From the NCBI RefSeq assembly GCF_964194025.1, contig NC_134482.1, forward strand, positions 39,990,001-40,054,000: a DNA stretch of 64,000 nt, given 5' to 3'. This document shows positions 1-60,810 of the stretch, piece after piece (position 1 is the first letter of the stretch; the number at the start of each line of letters is the position of its first letter). The notes beneath the pieces were generated by a model. It was not told the origin of the DNA. It worked only from the letters and a program-made list of their open reading frames with translations, and ran no database searches. The DNA is from Convolutriloba macropyga. Its lineage: Eukaryota. The position numbers were made by a program, and so were the translations under genes.

Positions 1-2822
1 ATAAATTTTCCCACTCTTCAGCCCACTTTTTTTCTAGCTAACAAAAGCTTACAAATTCCACCATCCTAAAAACGGTAGTGGCAGATGATCTTCACTTAGC
101 TTCCGTTTTTTGAAGTCTGAAATGCTCTTTTGAAACATCTGAGGGTGGAAATTTTCAACAAGAAGAATGAGCTGCCTTTTCAATGTGTAAATAGTTCTTT
201 TAACTGTTCCGATTGTTTACTATTGTTTTGCAACCTCTCAATTCAGTCTGTAGCTCAAACTAAGAGTTTCAATTGGAAATAAAAAAACAAAGGCAAGTAC
301 GGCATAGTGTTTTGAAAGCAGTTATCATAAACTTATGTTCCAATTTTAGAGAAATTGAAATAAATTTGGTTCTGAGTGTTTTTACGTCTCGACGAGAAGT
401 ATTGATTTTTTAAAGTTTTTCTTACCGGAAGTACTATTTGTTCAGGCGGCGCTTTGAACTTATTGTGAAAGTAGGTAAAGTTGCCGTGTGAACTAACTTT
501 TTCTGAGCAAGAGAATTTTGTTGTTCATGAGCTGCGTTAAGTGAATGACTTTTTGACTTTGAAAATAGCTTTTGAAAGATTGGCGCATGTAGACGAGAGT
601 TTTTCGTGATGTTTTCGTCCATTTGGCCCAAATTTTTTCTATTGCAGTTTGGTTTTTTGTAGAAGTAAGTTTTGATCAATGCCGAATGAATATGAACCAA
701 TCTAAAAATGATACCACAAAATTTCAGACAGCTTAATGCTTGAAACGCTTGAATGCGTTTCAAGTGCAAAATTGGCCCATATTTCAACTTTTGGCATTTT
801 TTTATTTCTTTATTTTTGGCCGTTTGAGCGGACTTTTTTAAACAAATTAGTATATATGTCAACATATTAGTATATATGTCAACTCTGACGTGGGTTGATT
901 TTGTTTTGAAGAATTGTAGACATAGCAATCCAATTTTTGTGGTTTTTTTCAAATTTTTCTAGATGTTCTGTTTGTATTTTGGTTTTATTTACCCTAGAAA
1001 ATCTTTTGGTGCACTAGCGCTTTTATCGGTTTTGTTTTGTTGGTAATTGATTTGTTTTTGGTCATAAAGTTTTAAAATTCAGTGAAAATGTTTAGCTTGT
1101 TTTGAACATTTTTTTTCAAATTGTTTTACTGATTCAGCTGTTTTACTGATTTATTGTTTTACATATGAGCTGATTTCACTTTTTACTGAGACAAGAGGAT
1201 GCCTATGTAATATTCCTAAACCTCGATTATCTAACTACAAAAAATCTATGCTTTTTCGCTTCATTTTTTTCATTTTGATTTTTAATTGGAGTTTCTAATT
1301 TAGTTTTTTGATTTTTCAGAAATTGCCAATTAGTTTTTGCAAATTTTTGTCACAATGTATATATTCTCCACATTCTAGCATGCTTTTTTTAGCATTCTCT
1401 TAAGACTTAAAGTTTAACTCTTCCTGCCTGTTTCAAATTGAAAATCATTGATTTGAACTAATAATTTTAATCTTTCTTCCTTTAATTTTTTTTAAAATCT
1501 TTGGTTTGAAGTCAATTATTTTCATTTTAATATGGCACTTGAGTTTTGCTAGCTTCATTTTCACAAATTTTGAGCAAAACCCTTTTTCTGTGAATACTCC
1601 TAGGGCTTGGTTTTGGTAACATACGAATGTAAATGCGCTTGAAATTTGTTCTGCCTCTTCAGTCTTTTTAATGACTAGTTTCGATTTAAAATTTTTTGGT
1701 CGTTGTTTAAATTTTTTGTGTTGATTGTGATTTCAAGCGACAAGTTGAGTTTATGCGTAAACCGAGAAAAATTATTTAAAAACCAATCGATCATGGTTCT
1801 TATATTGTTTCGATTGAGAGAACTTACGGATAATGATAAATTTTGTAATAATTTCGGCCATTTCTTGCAGTAATTCATTTTTTCTTCCAAAATAAAGTTT
1901 TGGAAGCCTAACATGGCTTGGCTGTTGCTGCCTAGGTATTTTGATGCTTTCAAAGGCGTACAAAACTTTTGTTATATATATAAGAGTAATGTAAATTTTT
2001 TTTTCAGTTGTCTTTATGCGCTATTTTCATTTTTTACTATTTTTTTGTGGTCACTTTATTAGAAAACCGTTGATTTAAAAGGTTATAATTTTACAAAGAC
2101 GGCTCTTCAAGTCGTTTCCGGTATTGTTCCGGCTATGCTTTTTATTAAGGATTGATAACTGATCCAATGTTTTTTTAAACAACGCGTTGTTAAGGCGTTA
2201 TTTAAGTAACGCGTTAATTCAATAACGCATTTTTTTTAAAAAAATAAAGTGGTTTTTTAAAAAAATGCCAGGCCTACCATCTCATCAATATTGTTGTGGC
2301 TTGGTTTGGATTGTGTGCCTTATTTGTTTTTGTCAGCACTTGTGTTCCACGTTTGAGAAAGTTAACATGAAAGCGCTTCTGAAAACTTTTCCATTTAGGA
2401 TGGATAATTGATCCAGCATTTTTGCCAATCAAATAGCAGGCACCAGAGGAGTAAAAAACAGCCGAAATACGAGGCCCTAAAAATTTTAAGAATAGTTATA
2501 AAGTTTGAGATCCCATATTCATTGTTCTGGGTTTCTCCGTTAACTAGCTTTTAAAATTCCCAGAAGATCCCTCTTCATCAATAGCGCTATCAGTGATGTT
2601 GAGCCAACTGATGCGTTGAAAAGGTTTCAAGAGAACTCCATCCATGATTTTGTTCATCTTCAATAAAATCTTAAACGGAGGAACACTGGGATTTTTTTGT
2701 TTCGTGTCAGGTATTTGTTTCATTCAGTGTAAAAAATGGTTCACATCAAAAGAGTCCTCTTAAAATTAGCATGCGTTTCCATATTGATAGAGGTCTATGC
2801 AGGTGCAACTACTGTGACAATG

Positions 2823-2894
2823 GACCAGTACTGGATTTCAACCAGCATTTCTTACTTGCAAGCCTAGTGTGCTACCCATTTACACTAACTGGTC
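2823..2894 (-). pseudogene. tRNA-like sequence (pseudo-tRNA or tRNA-derived SINE head), nominal anticodon TGC
   Basis: On the minus strand GACCAGT...ACTGGTC forms a perfect 7-bp acceptor stem; D-arm GTGT/GCAC; T-arm GCTGG-TTGAAAT-CCAGT. The anticodon stem pairs poorly and the T-loop lacks TTCG. Confidence 0.6.

Positions 2895-55070: not shown

Positions 55071-55152
<82 letters not shown>
55069..55152 (-). repeat. (CTA)28 microsatellite 3' tail of the young LINE
   Basis: Perfect (TAG)n on the plus strand, 39 nt after the ORF2 terminal TGA (55194-55192). Confidence 0.95.
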
Positions 55153-55191
55153 GAGAGTCTTTAGGGTCGGAGCCCTCGGGTGTGGAACCCT

Positions 55192-58077
55192 TCAGTTTTC
55201 GTTTGGCACGAGTTTTTTCATTGGATTGCAGATTCCACAGTTGCATAGAAGTCTCCAGGTGCAGCTGTCGAGTTCGTTGTAGCTTCTGTGGAAATAGTTT
55301 TGGTACATCTCTGTCAGAAGTTTCTTCGTCATTGGCTTCTCCGTTGTCCTACTGATGATGTTGAATAGCTTTGTGGCTCTGAAGAAAAAATTTTCGTCTG
55401 ATTTATGTAGTCGGTGTTTGGGGAGTTCAAATTCCTGCTTTTGTCTTGTTTCGTTTTCTTTTCGCTTTGGCAGTTTGTCTTCGGGGACGTAGTAATTGCC
55501 TTATAGGATTGAGAGGAGATAGAGGACATCGTGCATTTCCATGTACATGGAGAGTGGGAGTATTTTCAGCGTTTCGAGTCTTTGATGGTATTCGTCGTTT
55601 CCACCGCATATCCACTTTGTTGCCTTTTGCTGGATCTTCTCGATTGATTTCATGTCAGTCTTCGAAGGGTACCAGACTTGGGAGGCGTAAGTGAGTACGG
55701 GCACTACGTATCCTATGTAAGCGTTCAGTTTCGTTTCCATTGAGGTTCTGCTCGAAACATTTCGTTTGAGTGTGTAGAAGGCTTTCCACGCTTTGGTTGT
55801 TCTAAGTTGGCAGTTTGCGCTCCAAGAGAGATTTCGAGACATTACGACTCCGAGATCTTTTTGGGTGGCAACGGTTTCAAGACCTGCTTCGTCACGCTGG
55901 GCTAGATCCCCTCTGATGAGGAGGGTTTTACTTTTGCTAACATTTAGGTCCATATGGTTTGCTTTGCTCCATTTCTGTATTTCCCCGAGAGTGGTCTCGC
56001 ATTCGTGTTCACCGTGGGTAATTGCTTTGAAATCATCCGCGTATCCGAAGGCCGGGATGTCTGAGATTTCTTCGGGGAGATCGTCAATGTAGATGATGAA
56101 CATCAGAGGCCCCAAAATTGATCCCTGAGGTACTCCGCTGGTTACATTTCTGGTCTTTGATTTGCTTGTTCCAATTTTGACGCGTTGCGTTCGGTTTGTG
56201 AGATAGCTTTCGAGTAGTTGGAGTAGCTTTCCTCCGAGGCCAATGTTCTCGAGCTTCTGGATGAGTCTTTTGTGCGCTACTTTGTCAAAGGCTTTTCTGA
56301 AGTCAACATACAGAGTTCGAATGTCATTGCATTTTTTCGATTCAAGTTGCTGGTATAGTTCGTCTGTGAAGAGGATGAGTTGAAGTACTGCTGATCGTTT
56401 CTTTCTGAAACCGTGTTGGGAGTCAGAGAGGGTTCTTTCTATTGGTGGGTAAAGCCGTTCGAAAATGACTTTCTCGAAGACTTTTGAGACGTTCTTCAAT
56501 AGACTTATTGGTCGATACTGTGTGATGTCTGCTTTGTCGTTTTCTTTGTAGATCGGGGTGATCTCACTTGTTTTCCAGCTCTCTGGGAATTTTCCTTTAT
56601 TAAGGCAGGTTTGGAAGATAAGTTTGAGAGATTTTGCCAAAGCTGGGGCGTTTTTTAAGATTATATTTCCGATGTTGTCTGGGCCGCACGCTTTGTTTGC
56701 CTGGAGGCCCAACAGTTGTCTTTCGATTTCTTCTTCAGAAATTCTGAGGTAGTTGAGTCTCTGTTTTGGGTAGACTGAGGGTTCGTTGATTTTAACATCT
56801 TTGGTGAAAACGTCGGAGAAGAAGTCGTTGAAGAGATTGCACTTTTCACTATCGGTTGTGGCTGTTTTCTTTGTTTCTTGTCCATTTTGCACAACATTGT
56901 AGTACATTTCATCAGGGAAGTGTTTTGATTTGCGTAGGGATTTCAGGTATTTCTGTAGATCAGACATTCGGCGGCTTTTGAAGAGTTTGTCTTCGTAGAC
57001 TGCCTGATCTGTCAGGATTTGCTCATTGAGGAGTTTTTCGCGTCGTTTTATCTTTATCAGGAGGTTGAGGGTCGGTGCTCTCTCGTATTTTCTTTTCATC
57101 GTTCCGAGGATCTTGAGTTCGTGTGATGTGGCAGAGGAAATCCATGGGGGAAGGTTTGCTCGGTGCTGGGTGACACGGGGGATTAGTATCTCAATTATCT
57201 TTTCGATCCATAGGTACCATTGGTCAACAAGTTCATCGACGTTGCTGAAGCAGTAGGGTGAAAAGGGATGGTCTCTGATGTGGCTGTTAAATTCTTTCCA
57301 GTCCACCTTGTGATATGCATGTTTCACTTTGGGGGCTGGTTTCGTAGTTGATATGTCGATGGAAATGGTTGTCCGGAATGCTTGATGGTCGGAGCATCTC
57401 TTTCCGTTGATTGAGTATTCCCGTGTTAGGTTTTTGTCGACTTCGGCAAGTTCAATGCTGTCAGGAGATTGGGTGAGGCATACATCCAGTGATTGATTTC
57501 GTTTGCAAGGCAGAATTTGCTGAAGTTGGTGGGTTTCAAAGTTGTTGAGAAGCGAAAGTTCGTAGTCATCATCTGAGAGCATGCTGTTCCAATCAGCTCC
57601 AGGGAGGTTGAGATCGCCGCTGACAATTAAGGTGTAACTATCCCGTTGTTTCATCTGTTTTTCGATTTCTTCCAGGGTTTCGTGGATTTGACTGGCTGGT
57701 GCCCTGTAAGGGCAAGATTTAGGAGGGTTGTACATGCAGCAAATTACAAGTGATTCAGTTGGAGTTTGTAACGCAATCGATACACTTTCCGAGTGCGTTG
57801 TGTTTTTCAGTCTGTAGTGAGGAATGTCTTTCACCGCAATGAGAACTCCTCCGTGTTTTGAGTTATGGTTTTCAGTAGGTCGGTCAGTTCTGTGGATTGT
57901 GTATCCAGTAAGGAAGAGTGCATTGTCAAGTACATCGCTTGTTAACCAGGTTTCCGTGAGACAGAGTACATCGTAGTTCCTCTTTGCTATTTCATTGGCA
58001 AGGATTTGTCGCCTTTGGAAGTCAAGCAGACTTCGCACATTGAAACTGAGTATTTGGAGTTTGTTTTTATTTTGTAG
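55192..58077 (-). CDS. LINE ORF2: AP endonuclease + reverse transcriptase, no initiator AUG; one premature TAA at 55503-55501
   Basis: ILSFNVRSL, LCLTETWL, SGDLNLP, SDH, YRPISLL, QHGFR, DFRKAFD, GVPQGSILGP, YADD. The same frame continues after the TAA to ...SCTWRLLCNCGIC...EN*. Confidence 0.95.
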
Positions 58078-58919
58078 TCAATTTTGTTCCGGAGGTGAGC
58101 TGCTGCCAGTAGGAGTGACATCAACGTCAATCCATTTCTTGTTTTCTTTTTTCTGCAGTTTCAGATTGCGAATTCGCAAGTCTTTTAGGGCTATTTTCTC
58201 GACATCTATGAGGTATCTGCGCTTGATCAACAGAGCATTTTCAAGCTTTTTCTCGTCCGGACTGAGTTCTCGGCTCGCGAAAATTGGTTTATCGTAGGTT
58301 GCAAGTTTGTGGGCGGACAGCAGGACAAGTCGCCGATGATGTTCACTGGAGAATTTTGCAATTATAGTTCTCGTTTTCTCATTTTCGTAGGTTCCAACGC
58401 GTTTTACATCATCCATTGGGCAGTCGATATCCATGTGGGCGAGGATTTCCTTTACTTTCAGAACATCTTCATCATAACGCTCTCTGGCGGTTTTTCCGTA
58501 GGATTCGGGAATCCCTCGGAAGCGTACCCCATCGAATGTATGATCGGCTGTGCTGGTTGACGCACGGCTGGTTTTGTCGGCTCGGGCGGAGGGGACTTGA
58601 TTTCCGCTCGGATTTTGGATATCTCAGATTTGACTTCATCGAAGCTCTTTGCTATTTCCGCCACGTCCGGGGATTCTCTGCTGGATGCCAAGTTGTCTAG
58701 AACTCGGTCTCGTTGGTTGTTCTGCACACAGTCGTTACATATGAGCAAAACATTTTGTCGGATTTCCTGTAGTCCATATATGGCTTTTTCACTCATTCCA
58801 CTGCATTTCGGGGTCAGGTGCATGGAGTCGCCACACGAGACACAGTTGAACACTGCACTTTTGTTACTGATGGGGAGGGAGCACGTTTTGCAGGTGCTTT
58901 CAGGTTTTGATCGAGTCAT
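58078..58919 (-). CDS. LINE ORF1: PHD finger, coiled coil and RRM-like domain; one frameshift near 58545
   Basis: CKTC...CVSC...H...C...CNDC PHD pattern from ATG 58919. The -1 frame continues FDGVRFRGIPES...RVG...RTIIAKF...IFASRELS to TGA 58080-58078. Confidence 0.88.
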
Positions 58920-58930
58920 CTCGGTTGCTT

Positions 58931-59240
58931 TATAAACCAGTCGCAATTCCGAGGTAACAATTGAAACCTCCGGATTCACTGACGGGTTTATACCTCAACC
59001 GAGGGGGTGACTTTCCAACACAGATCCGCGATCCCAAAGCAAGCTAATTGCTCCTGGATTCACAGGATTTGATAGGAAACTACGAGGAAATTACACAATT
59101 CCGCGATCCTAAGACAATAAATGTCTCCGGGTTCACAGGAAATGTGATTTAGGGGAACGTAAGTACTATTACTGAGGTTTCCTTACTAATTTCTGATTGC
59201 GATCCTGAGATAACAAGACCTCCAGGTTCACTAACCAGAA
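58931..59240 (-). ncRNA. Cis-acting structured RNA: array of four hairpins with the same predicted fold in the ORF0-ORF1 spacer
   Basis: Hairpins at 59240-59191, 59146-59094, 59071-59021 and 58992-58931, each with lower stem, 1-nt bulge, GUGA/UYGC, A.A mismatch, 3-4 bp, G bulge, upper stem and loop. Stem sequences differ but pairing is kept. Confidence 0.8.
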
Positions 59241-59284
59241 AAAAGAAAAGAAAAAATCAGAAAAAAAACAGTGACTTACTCTGT

Positions 59285-59923
59285 TTACTCATGCTGTTCT
59301 GCTTTCTTGCTTTCCCGCTTCTTCTTTCTGTCCTTTTGGCGTTTGTTCGGTTTCTTCTTTGCCGGCTTCTTCGATCGCTTCTTCTTGATCAGCTTTCGAA
59401 GATTTCGACAGTTTAAGAGAATAGTGGTGACCAACTTGAGATCGATGTGGGTTTCGGGGTGTACCTGGGTTAACTGGTAAAGATATTCAAAATTTGCCTG
59501 TTTTCTTCTTGAGCTCAGGTTTTTGGTAGCTTCTAGAATGAGGATGCCGGTTTGTCGGAGGTCGATGGATAAGTCAGGGGTACCAGCTCGGCGGGTGTAG
59601 ACTATGGCCTCAATCTGCCCGTTTGAGTTGAGCTTCTTGAGGATTTCGATCAGTTGCTCGGGGGAGAGGGGTCGATTGTTGTTACTTCTGTGGGGGGTGA
59701 TGCTATTGTTGATCACGTCGTGCCAGATGACTATTCGTTTTCGATTTAGGAGCACAAATTTGTTTTGAAACAGGTGTTGCACTGTCTTGTACTTGTCCTT
59801 CGCTCTGGTGTTGAGAGAGAGGCCAGGCTTCGAGTAGGAAAGTTGTTGAAATCTGCGTTTGTCCTTGTGATCCAAAGTTCTTGTCAGATTGGCGAGACAG
59901 CTAGCTCCAACCAGGTAAACCAT
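59285..59923 (-). CDS. ORF0: 212-aa accessory protein, SGNH/GDSL esterase-like pattern plus a K/R-rich C-terminal tail
   Basis: Intact ORF inside the TSD-bounded element. VYLVGASCL, SKPGL, VIWHDVINNS and QVHP fall in the order of SGNH blocks I, II, III and V. Two diverged homologues lie elsewhere in the window. Confidence 0.8.
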   Translation of the reverse strand: MVYLVGASCLANLTRTLDHKDKRRFQQLSYSKPGLSLNTRAKDKYKTVQHLFQNKFVLLNRKRIVIWHDVINNSITPHRSNNNRPLSPEQLIEILKKLNSNGQIEAIVYTRRAGTPDLSIDLRQTGILILEATKNLSSRRKQANFEYLYQLTQVHPETHIDLKLVTTILLNCRNLRKLIKKKRSKKPAKKKPNKRQKDRKKKRESKKAEQHE

Positions 59924-59934
59924 GGTTTTCAATT

Positions 59935-60810
59935 AGCATTAATCCCATCTGAAACTATTTAATAAGAGAAGACGCACCGCAAAGTACATTGGCTTGACGG
60001 TAGTTTTCCAATTTTTCTCTTTTCTTAACCACTGCTTTCAGCAGAAACGGCTGCTGGTTCATAGATGGCTTTTGAGAAATGTGAAAACTAATTGTTGATT
60101 TCACTAGGTGTTGTAGTTTTTGCGCTTCTTCTACCACTTTTGACAGCTTACCGCTTTCTGTTTTGCGTACTTGCTTTCGTGTACTTTCTACTGTTTCCAG
60201 TTTGCATTTTAGGTCAACACTGTATACTACCTTCTGTGTTTCTTTGAGAACGTTCCCTGTATTTTTATTCCTGTCACTTGACTCACACCTCTGTCGCTAA
60301 CGAGGATTGAGTTGTTTCTTTTCGTTTAAGCTTAGTTTTGTCCCAGTTTTTCAGGAACTTACAAAGAGAATCACTGCGATTCGTGGTATCGATTCTACAA
60401 GTGAAGTCACCACCGAGTACTTTTTGTCTACTGCCAGGGCAATGCTGCATAACTTCAGATAGTTCCTGGTGAATTAATTGCAAATCCGTTTTCAATGCAA
60501 GATAGCCGACAATAACTATGAGGTTAATCTCATCTATCGCTACGGCCTTCTATCTATCATTCTGTGAAAAATTTGCAGGCGGTTTTTAAATGCTCACTGA
60601 TAGCTACTGATATACCATTTTCTTGTCTGCCTCGGCTTTTATTTTGGTAATATAATTACACGATAAAATTCTCTATTTGTGGTGTTTTCGTAACGAATAT
60701 TTCGGTCAGAGGAAGAAAGTAGTGTATTAGAGCCTCATTCAAGCATGATTCCAAAAGAGTTCCTGCTCCTGCGACCTCCCAAAGACATACGGTTAATCAT
60801 GCTACCTGTT
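59935..60810 (-). mobile_element. Older decayed LINE, APE to RT N-terminal part (host of the nested insertion)
   Basis: LTVCLWEVAG...LTEIF, VLGGDFTCRID and KLENYR motifs; continues into 55063 when the insertion is removed. Confidence 0.7.

Follow-up and report, generated by a model that had tools for sequence, protein, structure and literature searches.

An array of same-fold RNA hairpins between ORF0 and ORF1 of a CR1-like LINE

A LINE with three protein-coding reading frames

The window analysed here (the whole 64-kb stretch of DNA) carries on its minus strand a CR1-like LINE that consists of a short leader, ORF0, a spacer, ORF1, ORF2, and a 3' UTR. All of the parts of the element described below are on this strand. 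ORF0 (59285..59923) encodes 212 amino acids from its AUG and ends with a stop codon at 59287-59285; its predicted product resembles SGNH/GDSL esterases and has a C-terminal tail that is rich in lysine and arginine. A spacer of 365 nt (58920..59284) separates it from ORF1 (58078..58919, with its AUG at 58919-58917), which has an N-terminal PHD-like zinc finger. The Pfam matches for this ORF1 are weak and to zinc fingers only; matches to PHD were recorded for ORF1 of related loci. ORF2 (55501..58077) encodes an AP endonuclease and a reverse transcriptase (Pfam Exo_endo_phos and RVT_1). It has no AUG of its own and lies in frame with ORF1, from which it is separated by a single UGA followed by CUA. 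The 3' UTR (55071..55500) ends in a (TAC)n microsatellite at about 55071. The host clade is a group of CR1-like LINEs that code for three proteins: an esterase-like ORF0, a PHD-type ORF1, and an endonuclease/reverse transcriptase ORF2.

The ORF1 frame of the window copy is broken near 58539, where there is a 13-nt indel relative to other copies, and the window copy has private base changes at 59142 and 59291. Read depth in runs X1-X4 was raised across ORF0 and the spacer and fell at about 59950-59963. Because copy depth is raised up to that point, we consider ORF0 to be part of the element and place the 5' end of the element there. The depth gradient suggests that about ten copies reach the 5' end and that there are a few hundred 3' ends. 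The runs look like DNA: depth is even in the flanks, and it rises toward the 3' end as is typical of 5'-truncated copies.

The ORF0 protein (ORF0p) has no match in Pfam. Its AlphaFold model (pLDDT 88.7) has its best matches in the PDB to GDSL lipases and PAF acetylhydrolase (TM about 0.5), which points to an SGNH/GDSL-esterase-like fold. An esterase is known as a domain of the ORF1 proteins of CR1 and L2 elements (PMC3905857, PMC4120745); in contrast, the putative esterase is encoded here by a separate cistron, ORF0.

Structure and conservation of the hairpins

The sequence-only reading had claimed that the 365-nt spacer holds four minus-strand hairpins of the same fold and that the last of these ends 11 nt before the ORF1 AUG. 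The coordinates and sequences agree with this description, and all four hairpins fold as it had stated. Hairpin A (59191..59240; -20.7 kcal/mol, z = -4.2) begins 45 nt after the ORF0 stop, and its 5' arm overlaps an AG at 59232-59231 that resembles a 3' splice site. It is followed by hairpin B (59094..59146; -23.1 kcal/mol, z = -4.6), in which the private change at 59142 yields a U.U mismatch, and by hairpin C (59021..59071; -19.2 kcal/mol, z = -2.7). Hairpin D (58931..58992; -24.7 kcal/mol, z = -5.0) is the one adjacent to ORF1. Each unit folds on its own to the proposed structure (-19.2 to -24.7 kcal/mol, z of -2.7 to -5.0), and the entire spacer has a folding z of -7.9. The core pattern occurs 4 times in the 64-kb window, while 0.01 occurrences are expected. 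We also built a covariance model (R1), whose seed comprised the window's four units and three units from relatives. When the 64-kb window was searched with R1, the four hairpins scored 56-66 bits (64.8, 66.3, 56.2, and 62.9 bits for A to D) and the next best match scored 12 bits. In this search the motif was absent from the 3' UTR (55071-55500), and there was no R1 match after the Penelope-linked ORF0 that lies further up the window.

To find relatives, loci were fetched from public assemblies via ORF0 homologues. The sequence-only reading had proposed that the array be looked for in other copies, and the same four units are present in a sister copy (L001, ORF0 98% identical) and in two decayed copies (L006 and L007). 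The ORF0 proteins of related families with arrays are 45-56% identical to the window's. Two of these families come from Tara Oceans contigs: L253 (ORF0 about 54% identical) has five units and L254 (about 56% identical) has four, so array sizes are 4, 5, and 4 in three diverged families. L133 (about 50% identical) has two units, and L008 (about 56% identical) has one, which lies about 120 nt from the ORF1 AUG. In all of these loci, the units are located between the ORF0 stop and the ORF1 AUG, and 4-23 nt separate the last unit from the ORF1 AUG in the window, L133, L253, and L254. The linkers between units vary in length and sequence across families and are pyrimidine- or C-rich. L133, L253, and L254 are outside the seed of R1, and their R1 matches score 36-64 bits.

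Across 16 units, the base is an outer stem of 7-12 bp whose sequence is free, followed by one unpaired A, C, or U (never G). After this 5' bulge, the core consists of G-C, U.G, G-C or G-U, A-U, A.A, Y-R, C-G, and C-G, and then a purine bulge; above the bulge are a variable stem of 5-7 bp and a loop that varies in both length and sequence. The U.G wobble is invariant (16 of 16 units), as are both A's of the A.A mismatch (16 of 16). The consensus around this mismatch reads GAAUC on both strands, so that the core is nearly twofold symmetric. The stability of individual units ranges from -16 to -27 kcal/mol. The common core had been described in the sequence-only reading, and it stands with two small amendments: the third YCC/GGR pair of hairpin B is a C.A mismatch, and the bulged G of hairpin C is shifted one position further in. 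The unpaired purine is G in 10 of the 16 units and A in the other 6.

Covariation was computed on 7, 9, and 16 units, with slid pairing partners as the control. In these three sets, 89-92% of the paired cells can pair, versus 28-43% with slid partners; for the 16-unit set, 88.9% are standard pairs, versus 28-41%. Both sides have changed in 15 of 21 pairs, and none of 500 shuffles reached the observed covariation score. Furthermore, RNAalifold independently yields the same structure. Within L253, the units are near-identical to each other in the core and the upper stem, and the same is true within L254; these units are recent duplicates or were homogenised, so there are fewer than 16 independent events. 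The covariation signal comes from comparing the window's four units with one another and from comparing families. Relative to the window, the sister copy L001 has changes at three positions in the stems: at two of them a C-to-U change preserves pairing as G.U on the minus strand, and the third falls on an existing mismatch. We conclude with high confidence that the array is a structured sense-strand RNA element under selection. The compensatory changes and the invariant core bear out the view that selection acts on RNA structure and that this is not simple tandem duplication. The strand had been assigned from G-U pairs, and both the invariant U.G and the folding energies agree, as the sense strand folds better than its complement in 4 of 4 units.

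We rejected a function at the level of DNA or of the antisense strand in view of the invariant U.G and the weaker folding of the other strand. We also considered a K-turn or SECIS reading of the GUGA sequence. A K-turn or SECIS element has tandem sheared G.A pairs, by a 3-nt bulge in the K-turn and as an AUGA...GA quartet in SECIS. The GUGA of the hairpins instead pairs canonically with UYGC (G-C, U.G, G-C, and A-U), and there are no opposed GA dinucleotides, so we rejected this reading. The 5' strand of hairpin A presumably resembles the 3' end of 18S rRNA, but the family consensus differs and so does the structural context, and we treat the resemblance as a coincidence.

The sequence-only reading did not recognise the hairpins as a described motif, and neither did our searches. 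No family in Rfam 15 matched at or above its gathering threshold; the best scores over the hairpins were for miRNA models, at 15-21 bits (the gathering thresholds are 64-117 bits). With permissive thresholds, Rfam gave nothing for L253, L254, or L133. In full-text literature searches, we found no description of the motif, of a three-cistron esterase/PHD LINE, or of an AUG-free path in a LINE. The hairpin module is previously undescribed, and it would be a new motif for libraries such as Rfam; cis-acting LINE hairpins as such are already known (3' stem-loops and the 5' RNA of R2).

An AUG-free path to ORF1

The spacer contains no AUG in any frame (6.6 expected, P < 0.001). The absence of AUGs extends into ORF0: no frame of ORF0 contains an internal AUG in the sister copy L001. 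The window's ORF0 has a single extra AUG at its very end, which is absent from L001 and overlaps 59291, a position at which all of the compared contigs differ from the window. Between the AUGs of ORF0 and ORF1, L001 has 1001 nt that are free of AUG (14.8 expected, P about 4e-7), and L253 has 1131 nt (16.3 expected, P about 8e-8). The AUG-free interval is 681 nt in L002, from a more distant family, and there are one or two internal AUGs in L254 and in L008. AUG depletion is absent from ORF1 and ORF2.

A short upstream ORF (uORF) precedes ORF0 in the window, L001, L253, L254, and L008. It has 13-20 codons (15 in the window, at 59901..59948) and two in-frame AUGs in weak contexts, the first of which is immediately 3' of a conserved "tttcag". 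The uORF is in a different frame from ORF0, whose AUG it spans, and its stop codon falls 20-40 nt into ORF0. In the window, L001, L254, and L008, the ORF0 AUG itself is flanked by A at -3 and G at +4; its context is weaker in L253 (U at -3 and A at +4).

The AUG-free zone and the overlapping uORF suggest that ribosomes arrive at ORF1 by linear scanning from upstream, and not through an internal ribosome entry site (IRES). Judging from these sequences, then, ribosomes seem to scan through the hairpins to reach ORF1, and the pattern is replicated in three families. In this scheme, 40S subunits would leak past the ORF0 AUG or resume after the uORF, and would scan about 1 kb, through the hairpins, to the ORF1 AUG. 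Hairpins of -16 to -27 kcal/mol are below the stability that blocks scanning ribosomes away from the cap, so an unoccupied array is compatible with the scanning path.

Possible roles of the array

The sequence-only reading had offered two roles for the array: a multivalent protein-binding platform or an internal translation-initiation element for ORF1. An IRES has in its favour that there is structured RNA immediately upstream of an internal cistron and that the linkers are rich in pyrimidines or C, and IRES activity has been discussed for the intergenic regions of LINEs (PMC3894237). However, internal entry has no need of AUG depletion in all frames of ORF0 or of a conserved overlapping uORF. 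The units are also independent of each other, number from 1 to 5, and are variably spaced, rather than forming one compact and fixed multi-domain fold, and they do not match any IRES family in Rfam. We consider an IRES to be very unlikely and do not favour that part of the earlier proposal. If ribosomes scan, as the AUG-free zone and uORF suggest, then the hairpins could act as RNA alone: they might slow, pause, or shunt the 40S subunits that leaked past the ORF0 AUG or resumed after the overlapping uORF, and so set the ratio of ORF0 to ORF1-ORF2 without any dedicated protein. The closeness of the last hairpin to the ORF1 AUG (4-23 nt in the window, L133, L253, and L254) fits this explanation, as does the finding that families of the L002 type carry a single long hairpin running up to the ORF1 AUG. 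There is also a precedent in SART1, another LINE, in which RNA structure affects initiation at the downstream ORF (PMC3894237). On the other hand, a requirement for stability alone does not call for an invariant core with fixed unpaired residues. Also, to our knowledge, hairpins upstream of an AUG do not aid its recognition. A shunt of the type found in CaMV requires a short ORF whose end is just a few nt from the base of a single large stem, and a landing site beyond that stem; here, the ORF is 212 codons long, 45 nt lie between its end and hairpin A, and the stems are four separate ones. Overall, control by RNA alone seems unlikely, although we rank it ahead of the other alternatives.

The hairpins, or a protein bound to them, might instead keep the genomic RNA unspliced or aid its export, in the manner of the RRE and CTE elements of retroviruses. 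In five families, a hexamer that fits the 5' splice-site consensus (GTAAGT or GTGAGT) is located 0-8 nt past the ORF0 stop. In the window, GTAAGT lies 5 nt after the stop, and after it come a CTGAT that resembles a branch site, a long run of pyrimidines, and the AG at 59232-59231. Together these make a candidate mini-intron of 49 nt (59231..59279). The GUGA of hairpin A starts with the G of the candidate 3' splice AG, so hairpin A would mask it, and the first downstream AG is inside the first hairpin in L254 and L008 as well. But in L253 the nearest AG is well upstream of hairpin 1, and in L002 the candidate intron measures just 27 nt. There is also no joint at the candidate intron in runs X1-X4, which are DNA-like by their depth. 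Furthermore, only the first unit could mask a splice site, which leaves arrays of 4-5 units unexplained, and we regard a role in splicing or export as improbable. That the array is a functionless tandem repeat, or a precursor of miRNA- or piRNA-like small RNAs, is the least probable explanation and is very unlikely. The unit is indeed repeated, and there are weak matches to Rfam miRNA models, but these are far below threshold (15-21 bits versus 64-117), the conservation is in a basal or internal core and not in a 22-nt arm as in a pre-miRNA hairpin of about 60-70 nt, and stems have changed in a compensatory way around an invariant core across families whose proteins are about 50% identical. 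Finally, the same structural evidence that points to a protein-binding platform would serve for a platform that binds the reverse transcriptase (ORF2p, as in R2) or ORF1p rather than ORF0p, or a host RNA-binding protein. Any of these could equally be the ligand. The 3' UTR, which is where the reverse transcriptases of stringent LINEs bind, lacks the motif, and we think this version of the platform distinctly unlikely.

The fixed unpaired residues, the fixed wobble, and the indifference to the loop are what we would expect of a site that is recognised by a protein, and not of a mere stability element. In combination with the multivalency, which is kept in arrays of 4, 5, and 4 units, and with the location 4-23 nt before the ORF1 AUG, this fixed core is best fit by a docking platform. 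We favour a multivalent protein-binding platform, most likely for one of the element's own proteins, while regarding it as not quite probable. Each unit would dock an element-encoded protein, and the array would tie that protein to the RNA that encodes it. The near-twofold symmetry of the core (GAAUC opposite GAAUC) suggests a dimeric or symmetric ligand. As an observation on the other side, the single unit in L008, about 120 nt from the ORF1 AUG, is a point against reading the array as a platform.

Among the element's proteins, the leading candidate for the ligand is ORF0p, through its basic tail. Schneider and colleagues described esterase-type LINE proteins as lacking structural RNA-binding domains (Schneider et al. 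2013, PMC3905857), and basic peptides of these proteins were proposed to target a specific structured RNA, as lambda N does (PMC3905857). In the families that bear this type of hairpin, the tail shares a core of KKPNK-x-QKDR-x-KKR and is 58-66% identical, versus 48-56% for the body of the protein; families without this type of hairpin have different tails. Because the link between the type of tail and the type of hairpin follows the phylogeny, it is not independent evidence, and we treat it as a lead only. The basic tails could simply be nuclear localisation signals. That the tail of ORF0p is the ligand is possible but doubtful.

If a protein does bind the array, it could also block scanning ribosomes upstream of the ORF1 AUG, as expected for hairpins that can be scanned when they are free and that lie near that AUG. 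Occupancy might thereby switch the RNA from the translation of ORF1-ORF2 to the assembly of RNPs. In its most complete form, the model is that the ORF0p tail reads the GAAUC/GAAUC core with its A.A mismatch 4-5 times over and that occupancy of the array acts as a switch from translation to assembly, on a tricistronic RNA with a uORF-set, 1-kb AUG-free path. This model is somewhat more doubtful than that of the tail as the ligand. Still, the array, the AUG-free path, and the uORF together give a compact and testable model for the expression and assembly of a three-protein retrotransposon. They touch on two open questions: how the proteins of LINEs locate their own RNA (cis preference), and how these elements translate more than one cistron. 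The array is also a concrete candidate, backed by covariation, for the RNA structure that was speculated about in 2013, and none had been pointed out before. The core is small and well defined (the A.A mismatch, the U.G wobble, and two bulges), which makes it amenable to mutation and compensation.

The proposed platform has parallels in several known systems. It resembles lambda N/boxB, Tat/TAR, and Rev/RRE in being a small hairpin with fixed unpaired residues and, as in pairs of the boxB type, the same element encodes a basic peptide (here KKPNK-x-QKDR-x-KKR) in a gene that adjoins the hairpin. In boxB-type hairpins, however, a conserved GNRA-like loop is recognised, whereas here the loops vary and the internal core of A.A, U.G, and bulge is conserved. 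Furthermore, arginine-rich motif (ARM) peptides are rich in arginine, while this tail is rich in lysine, the site is repeated 4-5 times, and the binding is putative. Among non-LTR elements, the 3' stem-loops of UnaL2 and ZfL2 and the 5' RNA of R2 are cis-acting structured RNAs that are recognised by the element's own protein; the R2 protein, for example, binds a structured RNA of its own element. The UnaL2 and ZfL2 stem-loops are at the 3' end, in the 3' UTR next to the terminal repeats, the R2 RNA spans the start of a single ORF, and all of these are in single copy, while the motif described here is repeated and is found between ORF0 and ORF1, with no copy in the 3' UTR.

Other parallels concern translation. 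SART1 (with UAAUG and a downstream structure), L1 reinitiation, the CaMV shunt, and RTBV all involve polycistronic RNAs of retroelements, as does the present case, in which a short uORF and stable stems are in the path of the ribosome. RTBV relies on leaky scanning through AUG-poor ORFs, and likewise there is a stretch of about 1 kb without AUG before the next cistron here. Our element has neither a stop-start overlap nor one large shunt stem that follows a short ORF, and none of these devices needs a sequence-specific invariant core, which the hairpins have. In the MS2 translational operator and in retroviral packaging signals, protein-binding hairpins near a start codon could couple translational repression to packaging, and retroviral psi has several stem-loops, as the array does. 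Here, though, the start codon is outside the hairpin, which ends 4-23 nt upstream of it, there is no capsid, and the function is putative.

A DNA pattern scan of metagenome and viral contigs returned about 240 loci; the pattern was too loose, and among the first 91 of 120 metagenome loci from that scan, none scored above chance with R1. The region between ORF0 and ORF1 was also compared across other LINE families with an ORF0. In L130 and L132, the stretches tested after ORF0 fold no better than shuffles. In L002-L004 (ORF0 42% identical), the spacer is just 64-94 nt and folds as a whole into the single long hairpin next to the ORF1 AUG, which has a different core (z = -3.1). In L005, a stable hairpin (z = -4.7) is located some 270 nt beyond the ORF0 stop. 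Given these other hairpins at the same place, the requirement may be for a stable stem here and not for a specific ligand site. Structured RNA just before ORF1 may be general to LINEs that bear an ORF0, with the GUGAAYCC type as one lineage's version.

Translation of ORF1 and ORF2

Between the AUG of ORF0, which encodes an esterase-like protein, and that of the zinc-finger cistron ORF1, about 0.7-1.1 kb contains no AUG in any frame. This is true of the window LINE (58920-59923, minus strand), of its sister copy L001, of the Tara Oceans contig L253 and of L002, a more distant ORF0-bearing LINE (P = 1e-5 to 1e-7). Internal methionine is absent from the ORF0 protein, and the window copy's sole extra AUG within ORF0 arises from a private change (59291, minus strand). 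The AUG-free path and the methionine-free interior of ORF0 together suggest, at the level of sequence, that ORF1 is reached via leaky scanning or reinitiation. The window copy is also distinct from all other copies in the sequencing runs at two further minus-strand sites: a mismatch position of hairpin B (59142) and a 13-nt indel at which ORF1 is interrupted (58539).

ORF1 and ORF2 share one frame and are parted by a lone UGA, followed by CUA (58075-58080, minus strand), with no separate AUG for ORF2. Such an arrangement is consistent with expression of ORF2 by stop-codon readthrough.

Sequences flanking ORF0

A short uORF of 13-20 codons (59901-59948, minus strand) is conserved at the equivalent place in L001, L253, the second Tara Oceans contig L254 and the related locus L008. 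Two AUGs in weak context mark its start, and it runs across the ORF0 AUG in a different frame before stopping 20-40 nt into ORF0. Just upstream, the leader sequence cttattaaatagtttcag (59949-59966, minus strand) is kept ahead of ORF0 in L002, L008, L253 and a further ORF0 locus, L009 (the version in other families is longer), although ORF0 is merely 42-56% identical between families. This leader looks like a 3' splice site directly ahead of the first uAUG, and the ORF0 stop is followed by a hexamer that resembles a 5' splice site, so that ORF0 appears to be framed like an exon. The stretch from the ORF0 stop to hairpin A contains a candidate 49-nt mini-intron (GTAAGT, CTGAT, a pyrimidine tract and AG; 59231-59279, minus strand), whose AG reaches into the core of that hairpin.

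Upstream of the sister copy (L001:5885-5975), the element leader's opening ~12 nt ("atattaaatag...") recur several times, which may be a trace of 5'-end formation at insertion.

Hairpins and linkers in related elements

A comparison of L008:819-1025 with L254:726-1108 shows different sequence following an almost unchanged ORF0. Downstream, L254 has four hairpins and then a window-like ORF1, while L008 has one hairpin, an unrelated spacer and a different PHD-type ORF1. The ORF0-plus-hairpin module appears to undergo recombination between LINEs. The more distant L002 (6697-6789) and L005 (7000-7090) each have a single long hairpin, with the apical sequence GAGGUUUCAUU... common to both; in L002, the hairpin's end coincides exactly with the ORF1 AUG.

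A C-rich linker motif, GGAA/GUAG and then a run of 4-9 C, recurs behind the first hairpins in several families (window 59001-59012, minus strand; L253 906-920; L254 809-840; L008 about 915-935). The L253 linkers are 70-80% pyrimidine.

Within the 64-kb window, the sole above-threshold Rfam match is a tRNA gene (2822-2894, minus strand).
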